A stretch of DNA of 63,568 bases, filler included, from Platydemus manokwari (lineage: Eukaryota): NCBI GenBank assembly GCA_037951405.1. It is 6 parts of 6 records of this genome, joined end to end, with 100 filler letters (N's around TTAATTAATTAA, not from the genome) between each part and the next. Parts side by side here need not be neighbours in the genome. Positions count along the whole stretch, not along the records: positions 9,665 to 23,321 come from JBBMOY011655848.1; 5 more parts are not named here. One strand, given 5' to 3'. A program made the position numbers and the translations under genes. Shown here piece after piece: positions 560 through 23,321 of the stretch (positions within the stretch are counted from its first letter, which is position 1; each line of letters opens with the position of its first letter). The notes under the pieces are model-generated. The model saw nothing but the letters and a program-made list of their open reading frames with translations. It had not been told where the DNA came from and did no database searches.

Positions 560-2700
560 ACGCAGATAATTTACAAATCAGGCATGCATTATTCGAGTCA
601 GTTGGCACGAACATTATAAAAGAGTCCATTTTAACAATAACTGCCAGCATTTTTTGCTCGGTAACTTGCATTCTCTATTTTTACTTTTGTGATTTTTCCG
701 AGAGCCAATTTTTTGGGTTTTTTCTGTTTCGGCTTTCGGGTACTGATCCAGTCTTGAGGGATAATTTGCTATTGCATTGTAATACAGTTTTAATTGTGCG
801 TTTAAGGGGGATTCGTAAATGGAAATGTGAATGTGGTATGTATGTGTGCATGTTGTTTCATTGATATTGATTAGTGATTGCGCAAATGTCAGTTGCTACG
901 ATCCAATGAACTTCTAAGAGGTTATTACATCATCAGTGATAAGATGATGAATTGTGTTAAATAAATTAAATTCTTAACATGACGACCAAAGTCCAGAATT
1001 TTATCAAACCTCCAGAACAGTTAAAATCAAAAGATGATTTGGACAAATTCATCACAGAAACAAAGAGATTCTTCGAGTTGACTCATCAGCCAACAGAATT
1101 CGAAGAAACAATGGTGAAGGCTTTTCTTGCTATAGAATTTCTACCAATATATAAGGCCACCGAAGGAAGAGATTTTGAAGAGAGGATTAGGAAATTGTTC
1201 GAACCCAAAATGAACCTTCCTGTAGGTCTTGATGCAACATTAAGATCCTTTCTAAAGGAAAGGAAGAAAACGGCAATCAATTCTCCGAAAAAATTGAGAA
1301 GCTAACAGACAATAACCTTCAGCATAAATTAACCAAGCCGTCATTAATAATGTTTTTGACTCAACACGCAATTGAGGATGTGGAAATAAAAAAGAAATGA
1401 AAATGTGGGAAGCAAAAAACAGTGCACCAAACAAAAGACGTCATTTAGAACATGTAAGACATTAAAAAAGGAATAGAGGGAAAGAATCACTTGCTGCGAT
1501 TTATAAGAAATTGTTATTTGCAGATATAACTTTGCAGATATAACAAAGAATATAAAGCAATGGAATTCTCTAATTTGAAGAAGCCAACTCTCAGATCGTC
1601 AACATGAAACGAAAAGACAGTGACAAAATGGACGATATCAAAACACATGGAACTCGGACACATCGTAGCTCAATGCTGCAACGTACACTATCTTGTTTGG
1701 GGTAGAAATGGCCATTTTCAGTATCAATGCAGAGTATACAATCAGGCCAGTGCACCCCCACGACGACACTTTGAGAACTTTCAAAACCGAGGCAGACGGG
1801 ACCCACAATCGAAAGGATCATTTTATTTAAAATCAGGAGAGCAGAGGAACTTTAATGCCATTAATGACAATGATGAAGCGATGGAAATGGACATAGAGAA
1901 GTAGCCTCCTTACAGGGAGGCGTTAGGAGCCATAAAATTTAAGTAGGCATGTAACTGATACTGAATGTATGAATGAGAATGTATGTGAAATGAATGTATG
2001 TGTGTCTGAATATATGAGAAAGAATGATGATTTTATTTCGAATGATTGTGATTGTATTTCCATTGATGATGAAACCTCTTACAATATCCCTATATTTAAG
2101 AATAAGCTGGATAATATTGTTAAATTTAAAAATTTACATAAGTATGCTAGTAATGCGGTGGATGTAAGTAATGTTTGTAACTTGAAGAAAGAAAAATTGA
2201 ATATCGTTTATGATGTTATGAATGGAAGACCCAGCATTAAGATTTGGTTAGGAAAGCGTATTAAATTGCATTCCTTGTTGGATACAGGTGCTAAAATAAA
2301 TGTCATCATCGAATCAATGATTAAAAAACTAAATATTATTGATAGAATAGGTGAATCTTTGATAAAAGAGACTTGCGCAAATGAAAGCAATTTAACGATT
2401 CTTAGAGACAACGATGAGGGACATTACCAAAATAAAAAAATTTTATGTGGCAAAGACTATAACTCCAAATGTAATGGCTGGCTTTGATATGATGAATGAA
2501 TTTAATATAGAAATGAGTGTTAAAAATGTTGGGGACAATTGAACAGGTTCCGAGTATGTTAATGTATTAGACGTGAAAATAGATAAATTTCATCAAAAAT
2601 AAGTGGGACATAGGTAAGACAGATTTTCTTAAGCATTAATCCTCGAAGACAGCCTATACATTTAGAAATCAAGATCAACGAAATGATTAAAGAAATGGAA
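560..2700 (+). mobile_element. Decayed Ty3/gypsy LTR retrotransposon, 5' part (LTR-like region, gag, degenerate zinc knuckle, aspartic protease)
   Basis: Gag-like ORF 979-1305; knuckle remnant GRNGHFQYQC near 1700; protease motif HSLLDTGAKINVI in ORF 1969-2487; RT-start remnant NPRRQPI near 2640. Many frameshifts and stops. Boundaries approximate. Confidence 0.8.
615..757 (+). promoter_or_regulatory. LTR-like promoter cassette, copy A
   Basis: TATAAAAGAG...CTGCCAGCATTTTTTGCTCGGTAAC...CTTTCGGGTACTGATCCAGTCTTGA upstream of gag in the same orientation. The same blocks recur with similar spacing at 35246 and, partly, at 38666. Confidence 0.5.
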
Positions 2701-3642
2701 AATATTATTTTAAAGCTAAATTTCGTATCCTCTGATATTAATCATATTTTGAAAATTAAAATAATGTATATAGGAAACAATAAAAATTCTCGAAAATTAA
2801 TAAATAAAAATTATCTTTTTGAAATAAAATCTAAAATATGTGTTATTATTTGTTAAAATTATATTACTAGTAATGAGAAGATTACTTAGTTAGTAAAACA
2901 ACATTCTTGTGAAATTATAAAACACTATCTTATTTTATGTTTTATAATTTATGATTTTGTAAAAACATTATAGCAAAGTTAGTATTTCATTCAAATGTAC
3001 ATCAAAATATTTTGTTAGTTCTTTAATTTCATTACTTATTCTTGCTGAAATTCTGATGGAATAGTTGTTCACTAAAATTTAATTTAAATACCTTTTGCTA
3101 TTTTAGCCTTATTCTTCTACATGTCACATTTATTAAATATTTACCTTGATATAGATAATGCTAATTATACAATACTATTAATTTATTTTTGTAACTTTTA
3201 GAAAGTTAATTTCGCCTAAGCACAGAGAAATCTACTTCTGATCTTTCGTTATTATATCCAATAAAAACTATGGTTATTTTGACTTATTTGCAATACATCT
3301 ACATAAAAGCACATCATTTTTTACTTGAAATAAATTAAATTCTTGTGTGTAGGTTATGGTATCTAGAGGCTTGTCCAAAAAATATGTTTTAAATATGTTT
3401 CGAATATAATTCACTTTATAGTTTTCAAAATAATAATTATTTATTTAAACATCTCATTAGCATTGTGAAATAAAATATAAATATAAATATGGTATTCTCC
3501 ATTTGTCCCATGCGACCTTTTAGGAGAAATAAATGAATTACTTATCAAATATTATTATTTTATTCATCTAACCAATCATATTTTAACAAATCATAATTAA
3601 ATCATATTTAAATAGGAAAAAAACGGTAGTTTCTCATTTAAA

Positions 3643-4518
3643 ATGAATAGCACGTATTTATCACAGTGCTTAACTGTACCGTTTATTAAATCAATTCCAA
3701 AATGGTATCACAGCATCATTTATTTACCATTATCGATTTTAGGATGTATTCTAAATATTGTGTTATATATCTGCTACAATAAACGAAGATTTGAAATTTT
3801 GGGAAAACGAAAAACATTTATATTTATAAGAAAATTACTAACCTCTGTTTATATTTGTTCATCGATCGTCATATTCTTTGAAAGTACAGTTCTCATATTT
3901 TACCAAAATAGAAGCGATATTTTCTTTCATCTAATGCTTCAAACAAAATCCATAATTTTTGTATTGGAACTTCTTATTTTCAATGTTTTAGCAATTGACC
4001 GGTTATTGATAATTTTGAAACCATTTTCTGAATGGTGGAATGCAAAATTTGTAAAGATAACTGTAGGATTAACATTTTTTACACATATTACTTTGGAAAC
4101 GATAACAAGAACAATGATTATTGTTCAGATTCAATGCATAACAAATAAAACTCCACATTTCTTTCTATTCTATTACAAAAGATTGGTAATTCTCATATTT
4201 GTAGCTACAAATATCATTGTTTATGGATCTATTATTGTTGTTTTTGGATGGAGGCTGCACAGAAATAAATCAATCAATGACAGAGTGCGTTTGGGAAATT
4301 TTATGAAATTATCTTTGATAACAATCGAAACCAATTTTATTTACTTATTGTCAATTATTCCGTATTTATCGATATTTTTTCGCATTGGTAGCATCGAATC
4401 AGATACAGTAACAAATATATATTTTATCAATTGCATTACAAACGTGATAATAATTTCATTGAATAATTCATTTTTACGGACAAAATTGCTTTGTAAAAAT
4501 AAAATTGGAACACATTGA
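3643..4518 (+). CDS. Intronless divergent class-A (rhodopsin-like) 7TM receptor, 291 aa
   Basis: Seven hydrophobic segments; TM1 G..LN, TM3 LAIDRLLII, TM5 IVYGSI, TM6 Pro, TM7 FINCITNVII. Clear paralog of 30505-31398. Confidence 0.85.
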   Translation: MNSTYLSQCLTVPFIKSIPKWYHSIIYLPLSILGCILNIVLYICYNKRRFEILGKRKTFIFIRKLLTSVYICSSIVIFFESTVLIFYQNRSDIFFHLMLQTKSIIFVLELLIFNVLAIDRLLIILKPFSEWWNAKFVKITVGLTFFTHITLETITRTMIIVQIQCITNKTPHFFLFYYKRLVILIFVATNIIVYGSIIVVFGWRLHRNKSINDRVRLGNFMKLSLITIETNFIYLLSIIPYLSIFFRIGSIESDTVTNIYFINCITNVIIISLNNSFLRTKLLCKNKIGTH

Positions 4519-4699
4519 ATACAAATTATTTTGGAATTGTTTTTATTTCAAAAATTATCTAATAAACTTTAAGTATAAGCGATAAATAAAAACAAATATT
4601 TTTTATATATTTCAATAACTTTATTAAAATCCATGTTGTTACAACTTTTACTTTAGGTTCAATGAAATCTAAAAATTGGGTGTAATAGATGAAATAATA

Positions 4700-5346
4700 T
4701 ACTGTAAAATCCCGAGTATAAGCTGCAGCGCGTATTAGCTGCAGATGACATTTTTATACAAATATATTTTTTAGTTGTATAAACTACAGCACGTTTAGCT
4801 GGACCATTTTCGTTAAAATACTTGATTTTAAAACAGCAACCTATCATTAAAAAACAAATTTTACCGTGATAATAACCTTTTTCTTTTAATTGTTTGTATT
4901 GTTTACATTGTTTATTGCACTGTTTTGAATCCTTGATTGAAATGGATAACGATTCTAAACAAAAACAAAAGAAACAACGAATATCTTTTAGTTCATCAAA
5001 GAAAAAAGAAATTTTTGAATTAGCTCGTCAGTTAGGAAACACACAGGAGGTTGCAAGACGATATGAAATCAATAAAACTGTTATTCAACGATGGATCACC
5101 GAAGAGTTTGTTATCAAAGCAATGAATCTAAATCGAAGATCTTTGCGTTGTTGTAACGCTAGATATCCGAAATTGGAAACGAATTTACACGAATGGATTC
5201 TAATTCAACGTGAACGAGAACTTCAAGTGTCGGTTGTTGGAATTCGTTTACAAGCAAAATTATATGTAAAGCGCACAACAGTAGTACAACAAAAAAGCAT
5301 TTCAAGCAATTTTAAGTATGTGATACGCACTGTTACAAAGATTTAG
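4700..5346 (+). mobile_element. pogo/POGK (Tigger-like) DNA transposon, 5' fragment: TA + TIR and N-terminal HTH domains
   Basis: TA|CTGTAAAATCCCGAGTATAAGC TIR-like end at 4700. Frame from ATG 4942 has a Brinker-like HTH (RISFSSSKKKEI...VARRYEINKTVIQRW) and a CENP-B HTH (YPKLETNLHEWI...R). Truncated before the DDE domain. Confidence 0.85.
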
Positions 5347-8300
5347 GGTAATTGTCGAGATGAACAGAAAAAAACAAAAATTTAAGATGATAAAGTTTTC
5401 TTTTAATTTGTTTGACCTGAGAAGACTTGATAGATCACCTTAAATAAGTATGAATAGTCAGCATATTTAATTAAAGATATAAATATTGTACATATAATTA
5501 TTAGGAGAGACTAACATATTTTTTGTAACGTGCAATAGTTACAAAAATCTCAAATCGTTAAATCGTTTTAATAAATAAAATTTTATTAAAATTATAAAAC
5601 AATGTATGCAAAGAACTTTGACTGTCATTGACCTGCTTATAAATATTCAAACTAATGATTTTGCTTTTAATTTATTCGATTTATAGGTTAAGGTGCCAAA
5701 TAAATATAAGCATTAGACATTTTGATCGATATTTATTTTAGTTCTTAATTTACATTTCAAGTGAAGTTTAATCGAAATCATTTGGTGGGTTTGTTTTATT
5801 TAAAATCTTTTATTAAATCAATAAAACGAAATTTTTATGGGTGATATTTTATAAAAAAAGTTTAATTGATATCAATGATTGGATATGAATTACAAAACGT
5901 AATTTGCGTTTCTTTAAATGGGCGATGTCCACAATAATTTATTATTTAATCAGAAGGATTTATGGATTTATTGTTTTGGAAATAGTATTAATGAATATTT
6001 TTACGTAAAAATTACTTAACAAATACATAACTAAATTTGCCGTTGTTCTCTCATAAACGATGAATGTTTCGATAAAAATAAACAGTCAATATTTTTAAAA
6101 CTTAAATTTTAATTTCTAATAAATTTCTAAAATAAATATTGATTATAGCATTGCTTTTGATTTATAAAAATTGCGTTAGCACTTCAAACACTTGGCTAGC
6201 TAAATTGAAAAGTGACATATAAATTCAGTTTTTTAACAAAATATAAAAAAACTCATAAATATAAGAAAGTTCTTTGCATTTTATTACAAAAAATATTCCA
6301 AGGATTTTCTTTTAGAATATCTTATGCTTGGCTGTATTAGCAATTTGGGTGTAACGAATAATCTTGATTTCATGAGTTCAAACAATAAATAGAAACAATA
6401 AGGGTATCAGTGTTGCAAAATGTGACCATAGAAATACTTGGAATTCATCCATAATCTGTACAATCTGTATTATAATTTACAAATTTTATAGAGTATAATG
6501 TTTTCAGCTTGTATATGTGATTTCATGTGAATCTGCACTTGATCTTGCTACTGCTAGCATAGAAACTAGTGCAACTGTTAATACCAGTGTTCATAAATGC
6601 TATAACATACACTCAACAGTTTCTGTCAATTTATTATTTACCGATATCCGAAATAACTATTCTCATATTTTGAATACAATTTCAATATGATACAAATAAG
6701 ATAATCGTGATTACTAATACAAAATTTACATACAATTAGAAAATAACCTGAACAATACTAGTTCGTAAATAGCTTTCAGGACTTCAATTATTTAATATAT
6801 TTAAACAACTAATTTATTAAATAATCCAATTTCTCAAAATATATGTTTAATATCATTATATGTTTAATATTTATTTTTACAATTAATAATTTTATTTTAA
6901 TAATTATTATTCTCTTTTTGTTTTACTTATTTATTTTAATATAAAAGGTTTCCTCATTAATTCTTTTGATTTATTTGGATAAATTAATTTAAATTATCCT
7001 GTTTTATTATATATTTTTGTTATATATGTCCTTCATATACTAAATTATTATTTATATTAAAACAAATTATTATAATCCGATTATTAAATTGTGTATCGAA
7101 TTGTTCGACATTCAAATAAATTTTAAACAGAGAATAAAAAATTAGACAAAGAGAAAAATTAAAATTGTATTCATTTAAATTGTACTGTTTCTCAAAGTCC
7201 GTGGTTCACAGTTTCCAAAATTCAGGAATTTTGTTTTCTCCTCGTATGAAGATTACTCTTTTGACTTCGATTGTTCGTTGAAGAGAATAGCGAATTTCTA
7301 AATATGATCTTCGATCTGGTTTTATTGGTTAAGTGTGTCGCACTGTTTTCTTTTTCTTAACAAAATGATAGGCATAAATCAAGTGAAAACATTATCACAA
7401 AACATTTGAACTAAAATTAATTTAATATAACTTGAATTTCGTTAATCCTACACTTTACGTATTTAGTGTCTATAAAATAAAAATGTGGAATAAAATTTTT
7501 CCATTCAATCATTTTATTTTTAACTAATTAGGATAATTATTTTTTTTTTAATTAAGAAAAAAGTTAGCTAATTTATTTGGTAATACAAAATTTTATAAAA
7601 ATTATTAAAAATAATTTCTCATAAATTAACTTACTAAAATATACTTAAAGAGATCGAAACAGGGAAATGAAAGTGAGGTATTTATTAGTGCCCCACCAAA
7701 CTGAAGAAAAATGAATAAATATTCAAAGGCAACCGTACTTATAAACAGAATAGTGTCCTAATTTTAATGAAACATTATAAAATGAGCATCGAACTCATTG
7801 AAACATGCTCTATCAGTGAATCAAATTTCGATTTATCCACATGACGAACAAAGACACAATACTAACACTGAATAAGGAGTTCATGAAAAGAATGACATGT
7901 AAGAAGTGCCTCTACCCACCAGAGTCACAAACTCATGTCTTTACTATGTGTAAACCAACATGGGCAGTGAAGACATTTCCTTTGACCAAATAATGAAAAT
8001 GCAATCAAATCATGTAGTAAATAACACAAACTTTTGTGTCTTAAATTATCATAAATGTCAATTCATTGAATTTTAATTTTGAGTAGATTTATAGATTTTA
8101 AAAAAATGAAATTCTATGATTATCATGAAGGATATCAAATGTCCATTAGACCAATCCTACAATTATGGTAGATATTAACAACACAAACTTTGAAAAATAT
8201 TCAGCACTACGGAAAAAGATTGACAAGAAAAAGCTCAACTATACAGTGGACCTTTACCCGCTTACAGTTTAGGTAATGGGAACACGAATAAAAAATAATA

Positions 8301-9664: not shown

Positions 9665-10967
9665 TGTGTGAAATATTTATGTTTGGAGAATCCATTTTTC
9701 TCTTATTTATTGTAAATATTGTGATTAATTCAATGTAAAAAGATAAGATTCTCAATCATAAAGTTATCTAGTAATATAAATTATTTTATGTGATTCATTT
9801 TTTTCTTTCGATCTTTACCGAATAATTGCGGCTCGGTACCTTAGCTTGTTCCGGGATAATTCCTTATTACTTTGTTAAATGATCTGCCATGAGGCTACAC
9901 TGACATTTCATTTTGTTTGATTTTATTTCAAATTATCAATATATTACCATAATATTACAGCTTTTTCTGGGAAAGATCATATTATTAACCGAATATAATA
10001 TATAATCAATATCAAAACAAAATATAAAGATAAATATTTTTCTTACGTCAAAAATATTTGATAATCGAAAACACTTACATTTTACGATTATTTTGAAATG
10101 CATTTGTAAAAATATATCTCTAAATGATTTCGGTTGATATACTACTTTTAAACAATGCGAATTATCAACAATGATTTCAGCTATTTACAATTTTATTTTT
10201 AACGTTGTGATTGTGTTCGGTGCTATAAATATTCTTCTATTATTAATGTGCGTTTCTGTATAAGTTATCAGTTATTTAAACGATAATTATCAGTTATTAT
10301 TGTCGATAAAAATGACCTAAATTTGTTGAATGAAACTTTTGTTTTATTTTGTTTCTACCTAATTATTTAGTTAATTATTCCGTTAGCCGTAGAATTTTTG
10401 TTGATTTTCTTCTAGTTTAATTCAGACGGGATTTATTTTTCAAAAGTTTATTTTTATCTCACATGTACCAGAAAATATGATTTCATTAAGAATGTGAAAT
10501 CTTTTTGAAATATAACAAAAACTAAATAACAGGTTTGGAGAACTGGACCGTTTGCTGATTGAACCGTTGTCAACTCCAAAGAGTTGTCCACGTATAGATT
10601 AAGTTCAAAGATTTTTCAATTAACTATCGGCGACTCTTATCTTCAAACCTGCTATTTGTTGCCGCTTTATATAATTTTATCAAAACTAAATTCTGAGTTC
10701 CCTTAACAATTCTGCTATCCTGGGTGTTGGCTCTAAAATCTGCATATTTTTCATTAGCTAATTTTTAACTTTTAATTAATCAGTCAAATTCGAGCAACGA
10801 GATTTTAATTAAATTATCTCCCAACATCGTTAAAAATATTTTTCCCCGTTCAATTTAGAAATATTTATTATCATAATAAAGCTAGAAGAGGAAAATTAAA
10901 TGTTAATATTATACTTTTAGAATTTTGTATGACAATTTTTATTTTATTTCAATGAATTTTTTATTAG

Positions 10968-13089
10968 GATGACAGATATTTTCTCTCGGGCAGTCTTGAT
11001 GGAAAATTGCGATTGTGGAATATTCCTGACAAAAAAATACGCTATTGGGTCGAAGCGTTGTTACCAAATTCATTACCAGCAGCTTCATTATTTTCGCCAT
11101 TAAAATCATCTAGTAATTCATTGCTACCTCCAAAAACTGTGATTACGTGTGCTGTTTTCGTTTGTGAAGCCACTAAGGTAGCTGTTGGTACATATGACGG
11201 TCGAATATTATTTTATACTGCTGAGGTATATCTTTATGCATGAGTGGTTATGGTTTATTCAATACAATTCACAATTTTCAGTTGGAATATATTACATCGA
11301 TGGCTATCAAAAGTTCTCACAGGAAGAATAAATATTGTCGCGTGACAGCGATTGAGGTCGATCCAACAGATTCGTGCAAAGTCGGTGAATATTTGGAATG
11401 TTACACACATAGATAAAATAATCGTTAATAGATTTTGGTAACTACCAATGATTCGCGGGTACGTTTGATTGACGCTCGAGATTATCACATCATTTGCAAA
11501 TATCGTGGCTTTGTCAACACTAGTAGCCGAATCAGAGCCAGTTTCAGGTATTTTTTTAATATTATTATTGTAATAAAGGAAAACATTTTACGATTTTATT
11601 CAAATGCACCTTGTGAATAGATTCGAAAGATGATAGCTTTGATAATCTACTTATAGGCCAGTAAGTAGTATTGACACTGTAAAATTTTTCATAAATTGTA
11701 ATTCTGTTGAAAGCGATTGATATTTCTTTTCCTTATTTTGCCATCTGTTTGAAGAGAAAAACCGTAAGAGAAAGTGAAACTGGATTTTATTTTTCCAATT
11801 AATATAATTAATCATATCACCGCATATTATCAATCTGCATATTACCAGTTATTGGAATATATTGATAAATGTTTTAGAATTTTTAGATAATATTGATTAT
11901 TTTTTACATTTTTATAATTTTCTTTTATTAATAGAAATAATACTGGACATTGGCAATTTGTTGTGTGAATGAAAGAATTAAATGCAAAATATAGAGAATG
12001 AATTAATTGATTATAATCTATGATAGAGAGAGAGAATCGATAAATAAATGTGTCCATTAGATCGGGACTTAATTTGAATTGTGATTGAATTTGGTTTGCT
12101 TTTGTTTGCAATCAAGGAAATCCATTATTTATCTTTGCTGCCATTGTAGAAAAAAAATGGTATCAATTGTTAAAGGCCATATTATTTTCAATCAAAAAAT
12201 TGCGTAATAATCAATTCGCCATATTCTCCATTTTCAAATCGTCCTGCCCACTTTTCAATATGAATTTGATTCTATAATAATATACAGACAAGAAATCTAT
12301 TTTTTGCTTATGTTTTTTATTAAAGGCAAATTCGACTCGGAATAGATTCTAGATAATGATCGATCATGAAGAACAAATCACTTCGCTTCCTCACAATAAA
12401 ACCTATAATGAGTGGGGCTTTGTTATCCTTAATAACTTTATGATTTGTTCGAGATTTTCTCAGTCTAACTATAAAAAATAAACCTATGCTTATCTATCTA
12501 AGAATGGACAATATCCTTGGAGATTGATTTAAGTTGATAGTTAAATATTTAATGGACAGAATATGAAAAAAATGAATTCATTTATGATTGCCTGATCTTA
12601 TTTTGTTTAAATTATCCGAATAATAAAGATTTAAAATTGAAATCTATTTGTTCAGCCCTACTGGTAAATATATTATCAGCGGATCCGAAAATAGTTCGTT
12701 TTATATCTGGAAAAAAGATGTTGAAGTAAACAAAATGACTCGATTCTCAACGACCAGAAAGGATCGTAATAACTATTGGGAAGCTATAAAAGGTTTATTT
12801 TCGATTATTTAATGTCAGGAAAGTCATTTCAGCCAGTTTAGCTCACGAAACAGTGGTGTCAGTTTCGGGTTTCAGTCCTGCTCCTCATCTCGTTCTGGAC
12901 AAACGATTTCGACGTCGTCACAGTATCAATATGTTGAATCATCCTTATTCTCTCGATCAACATTCTATCGTTAGCAAGCCTGATAATTATTTAGGTGAAG
13001 TTATCGTTTCAGCAGATATCAATGGAGTTATACGTGTCTTTAAAAACAGATTACATTCTCACCCCGTTTCAGCCAAACCTATTCAATGA
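10968..13089 (+). CDS. WDR44: WD repeat protein 44 (rabphilin-11), 3' five exons: 10968-11225, 11282-11380, 11432-11547, 12656-12792, 12842-13089; 5' part outside the contig
   Basis: Spliced peptide contains DDRYFLSGSLDGKLRLWNIPDKK, AVGTYDGRILFY, ILVTTNDSRVRL, CKYRGFVNTSSRIRASFS, GKYIISGSEN, RKDRNNYWE and VIVSADINGVIRVF, all matching recalled WDR44 motifs. GT-AG junctions keep the frame. Confidence 0.93.
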
Positions 13090-16000
13090 TAATAAATTAT
13101 TATTTACGTTTTTGATTTTTACTTGCTCTTATCACCATGTCGAAGTTTCTCCCTCTTTACGGTTTTATTCTGATATGGAAGTCGTTTTGAAAAATCAATG
13201 TTTTTAAAATGGTAAATTTTCACATAAATTATAATAATATAGTGCAGATTAATCAATAATTAATTTCCCTTCAATTTTGTTTGAACTTAACGAAAACAAC
13301 CTTTTATGTCTGAGCCTTAAAAGTGAATAATTGCGAGAGATTATGGCAATTATGTTGTTGACAGTTTTTGTATGGATTAGTATTATTTTTCGTTATTATT
13401 TTCTTGAAATTTTACTTTTGCTGTTTATTTTTCTTGGAAAAATCCAATAAAAATAAAATCAATAATATTTTTCGATTTAATCAATTAGCAGCCATGAAAT
13501 GTATTCGTTTGATATATGTTGTGTAATTGTATTCTGATTTTCTAAACCGATGCATTTATTTTCCAGTGTCATTGACGATTACAAATTATTGGCTGTCTTG
13601 GTAAGAAATTATAAATTATCGATTGATATACAAAGAAATATTGTTATGGACTTTTGACTATCATTTTTATATGTTGGCTATCAGTTGAATCACATCATCA
13701 GATTTCAGTTGATTGGTTTCTATATTTAAAAATATTTTAAATAAACAAATAAATACACAAATTAAATACAAATAACAATAAAAATTTTAACATTTATTTA
13801 TAATATTACAAGTTGATTTTGGTGTCGATTCCAAATCCATTTTATATGGAGGTAAATGTGGATAGAACTTTTAATCAATTTTTTGTTCAATTCTGAAATT
13901 TTTAGAGTAAATAAATCTATTGTGAGAGCATTACAATATCCGCTACACAAACCTTTTGGAGTTTTCATTTATCTCACTCAATGGCGTTAATATTTTGGCT
14001 TTATATAAATTGCATTCCAATAGAAAGTAACCAATTATTTAAATTTTATCTTACTGCAATGATATTTATACTTTATAAAATCATACTTTATGTGAAATTT
14101 GTTTAAAACTTTCGGCAGTACTATAGATTCGTGAGTTTCTTTTCATTTGTCGGTTTAGCACAACTTAACTGATATATTTGATTGGCCCCTTCAGTTGTTT
14201 TATTGGTATGTATTTTTTTAATCAATTTGATTTCACAAATTGAATTTCCTTTTGTTTGTTTATTTGTGAATAAAGAAATTATTTCACTTATCAACGACGA
14301 TTCAACTTTGGAATACCACATTAACATGAGTAACTTTTATCTCTATGCAACAGTTTGAATATTGCCGGCACGAAGATTGTACAATTAACGTTCATTAGAA
14401 AATTTGGCAAATTGTGACTCTATTCATTTACTAGTTTCTAAAATCAAAGTTTCTTCGGATATTTTTTTATCCAAGTGCATGGTTCAAGATAATCGCCATT
14501 GATTGTTCAAGCCCCTCAGAAGAAAATACGAAACAATCTTAACTAAGTTATTCATATGTTATTTTTCTTTGTAATTATTTTATTATTGTATTCAGTGAAT
14601 TTGAATATATTTGTCTTCAGTCATTTTATTTATTATATTCATATTAATATTGACAGCACCATTTTTATGATTAATTCAGTGCTAGGAAAAAATTTAGCCA
14701 TATATCGATTGTTAACGGTATGTAAAATTTTGGGGTCACTGCTTTTATTTCTTTAATTATTATTATTGGATTTGATCGAAATCTATGACTTAATCATTTC
14801 TCAGAGTCCATCTTCATCATCAAGTAGTTATATGAGCTATGTATTTTAATATTACTTCGCCTTGATGTTCTCAACTTATGTGAAGATAGGTATAAATCGA
14901 TCTTATCTAACTGTTTGTTCTTCCAGTAAAAAATAATATGCTTATCCTAATCCCGGTAACGGCAATGAATAATCTTGGATGTTACGTTATGGTTCTTCTT
15001 ATGTAGCTATTGTGTATGTATTTTAATGATAGTGGTTACTGCTTTATATATGCAGCGGTGAGTCATTCACAGATGTTCTCTGCGAATTTTATTTAATGCA
15101 CTGCATAATGTTTAATGCACTGAAATTTATCGTGCTAGAGAAATTCACTGCTTTTAAATACACAGTAATTTATTTTATTTAATGCATAGCTATTATTTTA
15201 TTTAATACATGGATATTTATTTATTCTAGTTGAATATTTTATTAGATGTGCACAATAACTTATTCCGCTTGATTATTTCATGGATAAATTCACTATGTGT
15301 ATTGTTTTAATTAGTGAATTTATTATAAGATAATTTTAACGTTCTTAATTTTATTTTATAATTGCAGGGTTTCTTATTAATTATGAAGATTATAAATTGG
15401 GTTTACACGATAATATATTATATTATAGTATATTATATTCCTTTTGGTCACAAAATCTAACTGAATTATTTTAAAAATGTTTTACATTGAAATTTCATGC
15501 GATAATAAAAATTATACATTCATATATGCAATTACTCTAGTATTAAAAATTGTCATAGGCCCCAAAACCCAACAGTTATAATTAATTTATTCTTCAAATT
15601 ATCTACAAGTTATTATAATTTATTTGAGCTGATAAAAATTGATTATGGTTACAATTTATTAGCTGCTTGGGTTAAGAAATTACTGTACAATTTCACTAAT
15701 ATCTGATTCTAACCAGAATCAAAGAGTAAGTTGCGTATGTGTTAAATTTAATGTATGGATATCAATAATTAAAGATGTAACAATTAATTATGAATTAATT
15801 ATTACAACTGATTAATAAGATTACAATGTAGTTTTGCAGTGCCCTGAAAATGTGGAAAAAATAGTGTTGGGAATTAATGATACTCTGGTGAAACAAGAGG
15901 TCAGCGGAGAAGTAGTTCAGAAAGTAGTCAAATGTTCTTTGAAAATTTACTCATAGCATCTGAGGTCAGTTGAAATGCTATTTATAATTTTTCTCCTAAA

Positions 16001-16961
16001 TTTTTGTACGATTTTCTACTATTTCATGCTTCTTTTATATTATATTTCGTGTTTCCTTGAATCATGTTTGTTTATGAATCACTGTTGTTATTTATTTACT
16101 TTGTTTCTTAGTTGCTACATGGAAGTTGTCATTAAAACTTAAAAATTGTTGTAACTGTTTATTATCAACTGTTCTATATTTTACAATCATGTGGCTTTTT
16201 TTTACCAATATATATTAATTCAATTTCTTCATAATTTTGAATGTGTAATTTACTAATTTAACTTTAATTTAATTTTCTTATGAATACTTCTTATGATATG
16301 CTTGAATTAGACATTTGATTGGAATTATATAATTGATATCGATTGCTGTAAATGATTTCCTAAATTTACAACTGAATTTGATCCTAACTATCTATCAACT
16401 TACAGTTGATATTGCTGTCAACAATTTCTTGTGTACATATACAATTGGATTTAATGATTAACAGTTGAATTTGTTCTTTACGATTTTAAACTGAAGTTTC
16501 AATTTTCTAATTAATTTTCACTAAAATTCATGACGTGTAATTTTATATTTTAATTAATTTTCACTAGTTAAAGTTTAATTAAAGTACATTGTTATATATT
16601 CTACTGTAACATGTAAACATGATGTTGTAATGTTTCCTTGCAGTTCACAAAAAACAAATTTTCTTTAGTATATGTAACTTATCTATAATTTGAATTATAT
16701 ATATAGCTAAATAATATTCATTATCAATTTGAAACTTCAATTTATTTTACAAAGTATTTATTCCTAGAATTCGATTAATATACTTTATTTAAATATTAAT
16801 TTAGTTTGTTCTAATATTTAAAATTTTGTCTATTTTATTTGGTACCTAATAAACCACGAATTTTCTATATTTTACTCCACATTAAATATATTTTTGTATG
16901 ACATTTTCTGATAAAAATTATATTTATTTATTTACGCATTATATAATTTAGTTTCTTCAAG

Positions 16962-18518
16962 ATGATTTCTCCCAAGAAATCTGTCAGTAAGTTTCTAAAA
17001 TTTTTGAAATATTAATTGCTACATTTTGCTTTTAATTTTAATTTATTTAATTTTTCAGATAACTTAAGCAATAGCAATAAATTCAAACCATTGAATGAGG
17101 CAGCTTTACAGAAATTACAAATTGATTTACAACCTTTTCTAAAAGATAAAGACCTACATAATTTGAAAATTTTAATTAAAAAACATGAGCCTTATTCGAT
17201 TAACGAAATCGAAAATATTTTATTTACAAATATTAAATCATTCCAACCTGGTACTCATCACAAAATTAGAGATTTTGTTAAACGGAGAATGAAAAACTTG
17301 AAAAAAAACAGCACCGAGTTTAATACTATTTATCAGAGCGATGATTCGAACTTAGTTAGTCCATATTCACGAGATAGTTTTTCTTCAAAAAGTAAATCAA
17401 AATCTCATTGAAATTTGCTTTAATACTGTACTATAGGTGATATTAATTTGTCTCCTAGCACTATAAGTAGCTTAAAGACAGATATCACCAATTTATGGAA
17501 ATATCCGACATATCAAAAAGAGATTTGTCAGCTTTTGTTTCAAAAAGGCGATCTTGAAATGTTATCTAGCTCGTCGATAGCCATTGATTTCGAAAATTTG
17601 AAACCGACAACTTTGTTAGCTTTACAGGAGTTTATCGGTAATTTATGAAAATATTTATATAACGATCATTGGGTATTTTTGTATTTCGCGATTATCATAT
17701 TTTATAAAACTTTTATAAGTGAATCAATGAAATTTAATGTTTGTTTTTGAAATAATGTTATTAAATAACATTTTTACTTCTATAAATATTACAAATTCCT
17801 TAAAATGATTGTGTAATTGAATCAGCCAATCATATTTCACGAAATCATTATTCGATATTTATGATGCATGTTTATATAGAAGCTAAAAATAAACTATTGG
17901 AAAAGTATTTATCCAATGAAAATCTCAAAATCCTTCATGATATTTGGATTAATGAAACATTGAGCGATGAAAAGATTAGTGAGATTTATGAAGTTATTAA
18001 AAAGAGGGAGCCCGTTAAGGTGAACGAGAATGGGATTTTTACCATTGATATGACTTCATTGAAAACGGAAACCGTGATGGATCTCATTCGATTGTTTCGA
18101 CCAAATCACAAAATTAATAAACCAATCCAACCAACGAAGAGGCCATCGATAATGTCGACACAACAAAAACCTGACGCCATTCAAGCTCCTCAACCTGGTA
18201 ATACTATTAATCAAAGTATATTTTGCTTCGGTTTCCCTGATAGTTGATTAAATTTGCCACCGATTTTCAGTGAGATCAAACCAAATCACAAAAGCACCAC
18301 CAGAAAACCATTCACGATTCGACAATGAACAGTTGCGTTATTTGTCCAGTAAAATCAAAGAATGCACCAAAAACGAAAGCATCAGTGATATCCTTCGAAT
18401 CATCAAGGAGAATGAAACTGTTGACCAACAGGGAGGTGGAATCAGTCTCAATGTGAAGAAAATGAAGGATGTAACGATAAGTAAATTGTTCAAGTTTATC
18501 AATTCCAATAAGATCTGA
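16962..18518 (+). CDS. Protein with four tandem ET (extra-terminal/NET) domains. Exons 16962-16986, 17059-17391, 17437-17637, 17880-18197 (or 18215), 18271-18518; about 374-380 aa if ATG 16962 is the start
   Basis: Four adjacent ORFs join in frame through GT-AG phase-1 introns. Repeat 2 IAIDFENLKPTTLLALQEFI matches the BET ET motif [20 protein letters not shown]. Repeat 3 is IYEVIKKREP...FTIDMTSLKTETVMDL, repeat 1 KPLNEAALQKLQIDL...ILIKKHEP, repeat 4 LRYLSSKI...ILRIIKENE...ISLNVKKMKDVTISKLFKFI. AATAAA near 18718. Confidence 0.8.
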
Positions 18519-18668
18519 TCTATCTGTGTGTGTGCATTGAAGAAATCGATTGATCACCATTATCATTTACAATTGTTTCTCCTGCTATTTTATCTCGTTT
18601 CTCAACTGATTGTCATTATCCAATCATCAATTATCAGATAAATTATTGCTAATGTTCATCCCCCTCGC

Positions 18669-18687
18669 CACACACACACACACACAC
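18669..18687 (+). repeat. (CA)n microsatellite in the probable 3' UTR
   Basis: cacacacacacacacac run. Confidence 0.9.
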
Positions 18688-21600
18688 GGACGATGTTTTT
18701 AATGACGCCTTTTTACTAATAAATATTTTTGCTTGGTTTGATAGATTTTTGCCGTTTGTGTGTATTCAGATATTTGACCGTTCCTAACAAATATTGATTT
18801 TTCTATGAATCCATTTTACATTGTGCAGTTATTGATATTTGTAGAAATATTGATTTTTTTTAATTTTTGGTTATTTGATATCTTTTGCAACTTATCGAAC
18901 CTTATATTATATTATGTATATCCGGTGTTTAATAATTATTATTGAATTAGAATTTCCTTATTGATTGTTACTTTTGATATCATACGTTATGTGAATGGAC
19001 AAATTTAGTTTTTATTGATTTTGATATTTTTTACTTGCGATTGGTTTAAACACGCACATTTTCACCTTGAAATTTTTAGTCAAATCATTCAGTGGTATTG
19101 ATTTGTTTTTGTTTATTGTCACCAATGGAAACTGCTATATTTTTAGACATGAAACTTCTATTTTAGAAATCACGTGATCAAATCATTTGCAGATCCGTGC
19201 TCTAATTCTAATTATATTTCTGTATATCTTAAAATTGGTGAAAAGAATTTTGTATGTATTTTGAAAATGGTGGCAAGTTTAGGAATTTTAAAGCAATATT
19301 TTGATCTTACTCGAATGAATACCGAATCATCAAGGCAACAACAAATTTATAATATATGTTTGTGAGTGCGCGCGGATGTTTGTAATCCGGTTGTTTGATT
19401 TATGTAGTGTAGATAATATCGCAAAAAACTATAAAGCTTTAAGATGGGAAAGTTCTAACTGTTAAAACGAAAATTGATGAAATAATAAAACATATCAATG
19501 AGGATCAGTGTAACATTTCGTGCTTAATGTTGAAGTAAATAAACAAAATAAAAGATCTCCATGTTACCACTATCATCACAATTCAGATGACAAATCAATA
19601 AAATGAACCGTAATTGAAATATTTATGATTTGCAAATATAAGAACTGATAATATTTTCACTGGTGCAATATGTGAATGGGTGTAACGTATTTTATTGAGT
19701 TAATATTGATTGAAATGTTTTTCTCATTAAGATTGGTCAAATATATTCATTATTAAAATGAATAATTGCATTCACAATTTATTATCAAGTACTTAATGAA
19801 ATGACAGTGAATATAATTATTAAAATACAATCTCCTCAAGCACAGTTACAGTTTATAAAGATAATTTATAAAAGTCAATTTAACAGTCGAATGCATACTA
19901 ATGTTAATTGCGTAATGATATTTTGTTCGAAATCAAAATGCCTGTTATGGATTGATGAATATCACTTATATTCTCCTCTAGTGACACTTTATGCATTGCG
20001 CTACGCTTAAGGGTTTTCTTGCATATCGAAATGAAATAGTTGTATTATGTCAATCATTTAGTGTGGTCTCAGAGGATCTTCTGTGAGTGACATGGAAACC
20101 ATAAAAGGAATAATAATGATTTCTATTTTAAATAATTGACCACCTCGTTGTGGACTTGGTCTATATAATATGGATATAGGAAGAGAGAGGGTAAACTAAT
20201 GTGAATCGGGGACTCGAGCGAATTAAACACACCAAACTTATACAATTAGCGAGTTTACATACTGTGGACCGAGTCAATAATAATACACAATCTGAAGGAG
20301 GCCAACAATCTAGGACTAAGCCAGAGAGTGAGGGATCGCATGGAAATTGTATAAAATTGGAATGTGATGAATGATCCCATTGATCATATCTGTGTTGATC
20401 ACATTTTGGCCATTTGAAAATATGTGATTTATTATTATTGTTATTATTTTATAATCATTTATATTATTTTAGTGATCTATTTATCAATTATTCAGTGTCC
20501 TATTTTGTTATGTCTTTGCGAAGTAAATTAATATAATAATATTCTATAAAATATTTATTATTTTTAAAAACTCAACGACAATTGAAATTGAATCATAAAA
20601 GAATGAATTTTACAAAAATAATATAATCATATAATACAGTATTACAATCACTATTGTTTATAAATGAACGAAAATAATTATTGGAATTATTATAAAAACA
20701 AATTGTAATTACAATTATTAAAATCCGTTAAGAAATCAACAATGAAAAATTGACTTATTTAGAAAAAATTCAATAAAATTTAAAATGTTGCAAATAAAGG
20801 CAACCAAAAATAATAAATAATAATAAATAAATCCACTATAGATGAGAAAAGTCAACATATATGCAAACATATGTAAACATATATAAGACGTGATTTTACA
20901 AAAGTCGAGATCGCTTGAGTCGGATTAGAATATCTCAGATTTAGACTTATGTTGCAATGCTTGTTTTACTGTTCTAATTTTACAACTTAAGTCGTATAAT
21001 TAATTATTAAAAAATGGGGTCCTAAAATAAAATTTGTTGAGTGCATTGCAAAATTCTGTATAGTTTATTTAATTATATTCTATATAAACATTTTGAATTT
21101 TTATTTAAGTACTTAAGAAGAATTTTAGTTGTTTGAAATCAAATATTAAATACACTGGAGCTTCAAAATCTCCTAAAATTTGATTATTTGAAAAAAGTAG
21201 GTTGAATTGCAATTTATTGAAAATTAGCGAGGACCCCTTTTAACATTAGAAGCAAATCGAGAGATATTCTCAATTTTTACAATTATTTTATAAAATAACC
21301 AATGATATTATTAAACATGGCTGTAATTAACTAACTCGATTTATATTTATATAAATTTAAATTTAAAAACTGAAATAATCATATAGAAGTGTTGCGATTA
21401 GAATGGGAACTTGGTTTTAAAACTATGTTTTGTCGATATTAGACATCTTAAAACGTGAGATGTTAACTGAATTATACGAATAAATCGAACATAGCAGTTA
21501 TATATAAAATTAAGTTATAAAATTACCTCATGCGCGAAAATTCATTATAACGAAAGTAGGTTAAAGGACCCTTTTTCTTAACATAAGTCCCAAATTCTAT

Positions 21601-22149
21601 TTTAATCAAAACTATTCAAACAAACTATTATTTTATAAAATCTAATTTTAAAATTTTTCAAATTTCAATTCGTTATAAATCGTCCCACCACTTATCTTAT
21701 TCTTTAAAACTAAATATCCATGTGTTACCCATAAACATGTTGTAACATGAATCACAATGTTCTCTTTAGGTTTAGCTTAGTTATGCATGTCGATCAACTT
21801 TAGACAATTGTTCTGGTTTCAATTGAACGTTGCGGTGATAAGGCACGACTTGTAACAATATTATCATAAAAAGATACAAAATGAAAAAAGGTGTTCTTTA
21901 ACAAATATATCTGACACCAAAGATAAATATTTGATTTGAAAATTGGGTCCTGTATCTCAAATTGACTAGCATTATTATTGATCAAAGATTATCCTCATTT
22001 AAAATAAATATCAACACAATGAAAATGATGAAGTATCGACTGAAATTTACTGATATCGCTACAATGTGGTTCAATGATAATGAAAACAATTCGAATAAGA
22101 TTTTCAATTAAATGACATTGTTAAAAATATTAGAATATACGTGAAGTTC

Positions 22150-22865
22150 ACCTTTTGTATTTAAATGAAAAAAGCAGGCCCCTCAATTATCGATGCACCC
22201 GTTCTGTCTAGCATAACAATAGTTGATTTACTCTGAACCATCGTCCTAATCAATTGAATAATTCAGTTAATAACTTTTAAATTAATTTCTGTTGTGAATT
22301 ATAATCTGTTAAAATATTGTGAAGGTGAATGATAAATCTTGTGTGCAAGAGCAAATGGTTGATGCCATCCTAGTGATTACGTTTGCATGAAGTTGCTACT
22401 GAAATTGATGTCATTTTTGTGATATTTTTGCCCCAGTCAAAATATGATTGAGAATTGAATAGGAAGCTAAAAGTGATATGTTTTTCACTGTCTTTTTTGT
22501 ATGTCTGTGTGCTATACAACGCAAACCAATGAAATTTTCTATACAAAAATTAAGATCTTTGAATTCGTCTGCCTTGTTTCGACTGTTAGCTTTGAACGTC
22601 TCGTGATTGAGATACAAATCAAGTAAAATTCTGACATAAAGCTTAATTTAGGTCAATTTTTAAAACGTTTTAAAAATGCCTGCCATTAGCATTTGTCTTT
22701 ACGATATAATTCTGCATTTTAGGCGACGGAATGTTATCTTGCAGAAAAATTCATTAAAGGTGCACTCTCTGTTTGGTTTTTATGTCTACGAGGAAGTGAG
22801 GTGAGTACAAGTGGCTGTTAGTGGGCTACACTTTATCTTCACGGAACCTTGGTTGAAAACCACTG
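22150..22865 (-). mobile_element. hAT (Charlie-like) transposon remnant
   Basis: Minus-strand terminus CAGTGGTTTTCAACC at 22865-22851 resembles hAT-Charlie ends. ORF 22411-22617 carries the CxxH motif (LRCIAHR). Left boundary uncertain. Confidence 0.6.
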
Positions 22866-23129
22866 GATTAAATAAACAACAGACAAATCAATTTTCACAG
22901 AATTTAAATAGCTTGATCAGAAATTACCAAGATTATTCAAGCGAACAGACAGTATGAAAGTATAAAAGAAATTAGTGAAAGCACAATTGGAAATGATGGG
23001 GAAATGCAGGAAATCTGCATTCTTATTGGTTCATGGACTTTTGAAAAACGAAATGAAAACGAACTACCTGATAATCTAAATATTTGAACAACCCTAATTT
23101 ACAATATCTAATGGGAATTGAAATAATAG

Positions 23130-23321
23130 ATAATATATAGTAAATAATAATAACAATAATAAGAATGATGATGATGACAATAATATTAATAATAATAATA
23201 AAAAAATTAATTATAATAATAAAAATAAATAATATTAATAATAGATAAATAAAAATAAATAGCAAGAATAATAATAAATGATAATAAAGTAATAATAATA
23301 ATAATGATAATAATAACTATA
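23130..23321 (+). repeat. Degenerate (AAT)n microsatellite at a contig end
   Basis: Long aat/aataat run up to the gap; it produces the spurious poly-Ile ORF 23023-23265. Confidence 0.9.

Follow-up and report, generated by a model that had tools for sequence, protein, structure and literature searches.

A conserved animal gene for a predicted protein of four tandem, diverged ET domains without a chromatin reader

ET domains are the protein-recruiting end of the BET and YEATS chromatin readers, and they are both drug targets and viral docking sites. To our knowledge, work on them has hitherto dealt with single domains that are attached to a histone reader. In the BET proteins (BRD2/BRD3/BRD4/BRDT; PF17035), two bromodomains are followed by one ET, a fold of three helices with a long, strand-forming α2-α3 loop, and in Taf14 and AF9/ENL one ET or AHD stands behind a YEATS reader. 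The cleft of the BRD3 ET consists of L592, V596, I599, I616, and F618, and the loop 612-DEIEIDFE-619 is a strand, the acidic residues of which interdigitate with basic residues of the ligand, e.g., in IKLKI or LKIRL (bioRxiv 10.1101/2020.09.21.306696). The Taf14 ET acts as a hub: it recognizes a single motif that occurs in many complexes, and it clusters these complexes (PMC7442819). In Drosophila testis, tBRD-1, which is without an ET, works with ET-bearing tBRD-2, which provides a precedent for bromodomain and ET functions on separate cooperating polypeptides; the ET-bearing partner there retains a bromodomain (PMC4345279). The predicted protein described herein has no bromodomain at all, which sets it apart from that partner as well as from the BET proteins, and no YEATS domain is found on its contig, in contrast to Taf14 and AF9/ENL. 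Its four ET units are of the same family and fold as the BET ET and have the hydrophobic cleft positions in common with it, whereas the acidic EIEID sequence is largely replaced.

The gene lies in a 63,568-nucleotide window (the whole stretch of DNA that was analyzed, taken from the Platydemus manokwari assembly GCA_037951405.1), on a 13.7-kb contig (C1655848, positions 9665-23321) of a 911-Mb, very fragmented, AT-rich genome. To build the gene model, in-frame GT..AG pairs were enumerated as candidate introns, the resulting models were compared with three related loci (L013, L015, and L014), and splice sites were placed where conservation with these orthologous loci stops or starts. One gene model fits both the enumeration and the related loci. 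Positions 16962-18518 of the plus strand form a five-exon gene that runs exactly from ATG to stop, with a coding length of 1143 nt and a basic product of 380 residues (pI 9.4). All four introns are GT..AG introns in phase 1, with lengths of 72, 45, 242, and 55 nt, and exons 2-5 each carry one ET-like unit of ∼65 residues (Table 1). The original prediction that four ORFs join into one frame was borne out in these exons: four plus-strand ORFs with similar products lie between 17016 and 18518, and a first exon of 25 nt supplies the ATG. Exons 2-4 comprise whole numbers of codons between phase-1 introns, which is the geometry expected of exon duplication. No DNA-level repeat was found among the exons, and an assembly duplication or artifact is therefore not the source of the tandem arrangement. 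A search of the 911 Mb with a profile built from the four units indicates that the gene is single copy in its own genome.

Table 1. Coordinates of the ET gene and of neighboring features, counted along the window
Feature	Position	Strand	Remark
WD-repeat gene, several exons (RLWNIPDKK, TNDSRVRLIDARDY, DINGVIRVFKN)	11007-13089	+	Weak Pfam WD matches
In-frame TAA, 18 nt 5' of the ATG	16944..16946	+	
Exon 1 (25 nt): ATG-initiated, 8 codons + 1 nt, MISPKKSV	16962..16986	+	L013 similarity from 16961; GTAAGT donor conserved
Exon 2: ET unit 1 (∼aa 18-85), basic stretch KRRMKNLKK, linker 1	17059..17391	+	TTTTCAG acceptor and GTAAAT donor, both conserved in L013
Linker motif SDDSNLVSPYSRDSFSS (aa 102-118)	17337..17387	+	Identical in orthologue
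Exon 3: ET unit 2 (aa 121-186)	17437..17637	+	
Exon 4: ET unit 3 (aa 187-262), poorly conserved basic linker 3	17880..18215	+	Acceptor and donor conserved in L015 and L014
Exon 5: ET unit 4 (aa 316-380), stop TGA 18516-18518	18271..18518	+	Stop position shared by L015 and L014
AATAAA, possible polyadenylation signal, 200 nt past the stop	18718..18723	+	Consensus match only

The related loci were identified when 1.84 billion representatives were searched exhaustively with the four-unit profile; 13 proteins were returned. The best five of these 13 matches are fragments of one exon each, corresponding to units 4, 4, 3, 1, and 2, and all of the orthologue fragments were singletons in the cluster look-up. 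Units 1 and 2 lie side by side in L013, as do units 3 and 4 in L015, and both loci are from one ENA sample; the two contigs do not overlap and were joined as one orthologue on the assumption that they are linked. Units 3 and 4 are also adjacent in L014, from a Logan run, and its GC content of 57% indicates another organism. Scanning of the JGI metagenome contigs with the unit 4 and unit 3 alignments did not find relatives. Exon lengths (25, 333, 201, 315/336, and 248 nt) are common to the orthologues, the conservation of the start, the stop, and each of the eight splice sites extends to as many as three species, and the exon 1 peptide of L013, MVSPRKSI, resembles the MISPKKSV seen here. Over 371 codons, comparison with the AT-rich relative (L013 joined to L015) gave a dN of 0.275, a dS of ∼2.55, which is saturated, and a dN/dS of 0.11. 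By unit, dN is 0.21 to 0.31, as compared to 0.64 for linker 3. In a tree, the units group by number across species (support 100/100 for unit 1, 99/99 for unit 2, and 87/100 for unit 3) rather than by organism, from which it follows that the four-fold repeat arose before these lineages separated.

By these measures of constraint, the locus is a real, conserved protein-coding animal gene under purifying selection, as the dN/dS comparison with relatives proposed at the outset had been meant to gauge, and the tree shows the four-fold repeat to be older than the split of the sampled organisms. A decaying or nonfunctional locus, i.e., a pseudogene or a set of chance ORFs, has a vanishingly small probability in our estimation. 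It would agree with the outcome of a search of sequencing runs for the locus sequence, which found one DNA-type holder and no RNA run, but the reading frame is intact, the dN/dS is 0.11 with dS saturated, and the start, stop, and splice sites are held in common as described above. We infer from this selection that the gene is transcribed.

The assignment of the four units to the ET family was examined with several profile methods. Against the Pfam BET model (PF17035, curated cut-off of 24.5 bits), unit 4 scored above the cut-off at 26.3 bits, units 3 (21.9 bits) and 2 (18.4 bits) fell below it, and unit 1 gave no match at E ≤ 10. The Pfam AHD model gave 12.6 bits for unit 4. When the four-unit profile was compared with PDB sequences, it matched only BRD4, BRD3, and BRD2 ET chains, over the full length (E 2.5e-5 to 1e-3), and the remaining chains all had E ≥ 0.36. 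Alignment by hhalign of each unit with its orthologues against 10 canonical ETs gave probabilities of 93.7%, 96.3%, 90.7%, and 96.3% for units 1-4, with pairwise E values of 2e-7 to 1.5e-9. Together with the PDB matches, these values bear out the claim that each ORF encodes an ET unit of ∼65 residues. Across the 911-Mb genome, the four-unit profile matched only the four units here and three canonical BET genes, and the Pfam BET model gave only 12 matches at E ≤ 10; the ET likeness is not due to chance. An alignment-free language-model search of the ESM Atlas, the results of which serve as leads only, placed unit 1 (0.90) and unit 3 (0.88) nearest to BET/AHD clusters, with BET families as the closest named clusters of unit 3. 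Pairwise identity among the four units is only 16 to 28%. Taken together, the profile comparisons show all four units to be homologous to ET domains.

Folds were modeled exon by exon for units 1 and 2, the two weakest and most doubtful units. It should be noted that canonical ETs were among the sequences of the MSAs used for folding, which makes the models partly dependent on the homology call. The AF2 model of unit 1 (exon 2) has a pLDDT of ∼90 over exon residues 11-80. Its best four Foldseek matches are BRD4 and BRD3 ETs with probabilities of 0.89 to 0.97, as compared to 0.23 for the next match, and VIA gave Z of 6.8 to 7.7 to five BRD3/4 ET entries, followed by 4.8. The concern raised beforehand that repeat 1 might not fold as an ET was eased by these matches to BRD3/4 ETs. 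The AF2 model of unit 2 (exon 3; pLDDT 89.1) consists of three helices and a β hairpin and matches the BRD4 ET with a Foldseek probability of 1.00 and a TM of 0.69. The best 15 VIA matches of unit 2 are all AF9 AHD, Taf14 ET, or BRD ET entries (Z 5.9-8.9; next 3.2), and the values for AF9 AHD (Z 8.7-8.9) and Taf14 ET (Z 7.4-7.8) are at least equal to those for BRD ET. Units 1 and 2 are predicted by these models to adopt the ET fold.

A second ET gene and an additional ORF were observed elsewhere in the same genome. On a contig of 5.8 kb (C321891, 1219-3792, minus strand), a gene encodes one clear ET (2557-2859, 31.9 bits) between a K/S/T-rich exon and an acidic/coiled-coil exon, and there is no bromodomain on the contig. 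It was considered as a second multi-ET gene and rejected: an upstream ORF looks ET-like by eye and reached an hhalign probability of only 3.9%. Contig C1566966 contains an ASH1L-like uninterrupted ORF of 1147 residues (2221-5664, minus strand) that is ∼30% identical to the best annotated metazoan matches, a level which indicates that the host lineage is very divergent or unsampled. A nematode origin, to which the TTTTCAG acceptors seemed to point, is not supported, as neither an SL1 RNA nor a cuticle-collagen N domain was found, and a search for arthropod markers gave no support for an arthropod origin. The host is therefore a metazoan distant from annotated genomes.

Genome-wide searches gave 67 bromodomain and 10 YEATS matches, none of which is on the contig that carries the four-ET gene. 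Such an outcome bears on the explanation that only the 3' portion of a larger BET- or YEATS-like gene is seen here, with its reader exons upstream or off the contig. The 5' exons of eukaryotic genes can be distant, which leaves room for one more than 645 nt upstream, an AG lies shortly 5' of the ATG in both species, and the search of sequencing runs yielded no RNA run with the locus sequence. However, the contig extends 7.3 kb upstream, and a separate gene on the same strand, the WD-repeat gene of Table 1, lies between its start and the ET gene and ends 3.9 kb upstream of the latter. This WD-repeat gene presumably resembles WDR44. Moreover, nucleotide similarity to L013 sets in at the ATG, just one base before it, and both species have in-frame stops ahead of the ATG (the TAA of Table 1 here and a TAG 54 nt upstream in L013). 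The nearest upstream AG is separated from the ATG by 10 nt in one of the species and by 12 nt in the other, and any coding extension from it would consequently differ in phase between them. Based on these observations, we regard an incomplete gene model as very improbable. The expectation that the protein has no chromatin reader was upheld by the empty contig, by the conservation that starts at the ATG, and by the upstream stops, and a product that consists of four ET units without a bromodomain, YEATS, or other reader domain is supported at the level of the gene model.

With respect to the ligand-binding surface, alignment with BRD3 reveals that hydrophobic residues predominate at the cleft positions of all four units, e.g., I/Y/I/I/M in unit 3 and I/L/I/L/V in unit 4. 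The exceptions are Q and C at two positions of unit 2, and the register of unit 1 is uncertain. At the positions of DEIEIDFE, unit 2 has SSIAIDFE, in which two of the five acidic residues are kept; unit 3 has GIFTIDMT, with one acidic residue kept; and unit 4 has GGISLNVK followed by KMKD, which is basic and keeps none. Unit 1 has NILFTNIK within EIENILFTNIK, a divergent sequence. The acidic EIEID stripe is, in other words, mostly lost. Every unit has lost it in a manner of its own, and the orthologues retain the respective versions. Within every unit, conservation is highest at the cleft hydrophobics and in the loop sequence. The loss of the acidic stripe bears on the type of ligand and not on membership in the ET fold.

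The replaced acidic residues weigh on whether the protein could act upon BET proteins. It had been proposed beforehand that the protein could be a dominant-negative competitor of BET proteins or a decoy for integrase and LANA. A protein of this kind would absorb the basic-hydrophobic motifs that bind ETs (NSD3, CHD4, BRG1, JMJD6, and retroelement integrase tails) and would damp BET-dependent recruitment or divert retroelement integration. The models of units 1 and 2 have the same fold as the BET ET, unit 2 retains IxIDFE and with it two of five acidic residues, and three canonical BET genes are present in the same genome. However, the EIEID acidic residues that pair with basic ligand residues are replaced in units 1, 3, and 4, the corresponding segment of unit 4 is basic (NVKKMKD) and conserved as such in all three species, and the whole protein is basic (pI 9.4). 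In addition, units that are 16 to 28% identical and separately conserved fit four specificities better than four copies of a decoy. The proposal is weakened in that the acidic sequence required for it is lost in three units and half kept in unit 2, and we consider it quite improbable. Since the acidic stripe is mostly lost, and lost differently in each unit, an adaptor with four specificities is favored over a BET competitor or decoy.

A second group of observations concerns units that would not bind ligands at all. In the model of unit 1, the α2-α3 loop forms a short helix in place of an open strand-forming loop, and the socket of this unit may be occluded or nonfunctional. Linker 1 contains a Ser/Asp-rich motif of 17 residues, SDDSNLVSPYSRDSFSS, that is 100% identical in the orthologue although synonymous sites are saturated, and this motif may be a phosphorylation-regulated, docking, or partner site. 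The helical loop, the lost acidic stripe, and the fully conserved linker motif would each be consistent with a structural or self-associating protein, in which the units are helical spacers or oligomerization modules, or in which the linker motif fills a socket in cis. Against this stands the conservation of the cleft hydrophobics and loops ahead of the remainder of each unit, as expected of working sockets. The linker motif was also modeled as disordered, with a pLDDT of ∼50 and no docking in cis on unit 1. We judge a purely structural or self-associating role to be unlikely. A co-fold of the linker motif with units 2-4 reached a score of 0.21 as compared to a mark of 0.34, which speaks neither for binding nor against it.

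Reader-less ET proteins are not confined to this gene. The Meloidogyne hapla protein A0A1I8BMA1 (242 residues; uncharacterized) has two tandem, near-identical canonical ETs and no bromodomain; it represents an independent and simpler example of several ETs in a protein without a reader. TRFO_37509 of Tritrichomonas foetus (237 residues) has one ET and no bromodomain. In the ESM Atlas, ET-only clusters of ∼85 residues are mainly from Nucleocytoviricota (74 and 181 members), with others from Streptophyta and Nematoda. The M. hapla, T. foetus, and Nucleocytoviricota proteins are similar to the one described here in having an ET without a bromodomain. However, EIEIDF is intact in their ETs, which are canonical. 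All have fewer than three units and are nonorthologous, with 13 to 36% identity to the units here. No protein with at least three ET-matched stretches was found among the 1.84 billion representatives, where multi-exon genes from metagenomes appear only as fragments. A literature search likewise found no description of tandem, multiple, or stand-alone ET proteins, and no description of stand-alone ET domains in giant viruses was found in the literature searched. A premise that an ET always sits beside a reader is too strong in view of the ET-only proteins predicted in M. hapla, T. foetus, and giant viruses, none of which is characterized in the literature searched. Similarly, the claim that no ET-only tetra-repeat protein is known agrees with the failure to find a protein with at least three ETs, and it has to be set beside the ET-only protein with two units in M. 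hapla. The comparison supports the four-ET, reader-less arrangement as a new architecture of the ET family that is neither of the BET nor of the Taf14/AF9 type.

Our current hypothesis, to which we assign slightly better than even chances, is that this single-copy metazoan gene encodes a tetravalent ET adaptor or hub, with four tandem, diverged ET/NET domains and without a reader. The precedent for the idea of an ET hub is the Taf14 ET (PMC7442819). Each unit would serve as a socket into which a partner protein inserts a short hydrophobic motif that forms a strand, as in the BET ET, the Taf14 ET, and the AF9 AHD. The four sockets would probably have four different ligands, other than the classical basic motif of the KIKL type, because the cleft hydrophobics are kept while the acidic stripe is replaced unit by unit and each version is conserved. 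Such a hub would gather several, probably nuclear, proteins and would owe its recruitment to these partners, with no reading of histone marks of its own. The domain family and the basic stretch are what suggest a nuclear localization. A bolder proposal, that we hold only tentatively and at clearly less than even chances, is that the protein founds a reader-less "poly-ET" class, in which four nonequivalent sockets would each capture a different nonbasic linear motif and thereby cluster chromatin or transcription complexes independently of acetylation. A class of this type would amount to the hub principle of Taf14 in a domain-only form that evolved through the duplication of exons in a sparsely sampled lineage of animals.

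ET-only architectures sit unstudied in the databases, and they range from the two-ET protein of a nematode and the mini-ETs of giant viruses to the four-ET protein described herein. Should the adaptor hypothesis be true, the ET fold can serve as a free-standing multivalent adaptor, and the repertoire of ET ligands would extend past the basic-hydrophobic motif. The four natural variants would then be a ready-made specificity panel for the ET socket.
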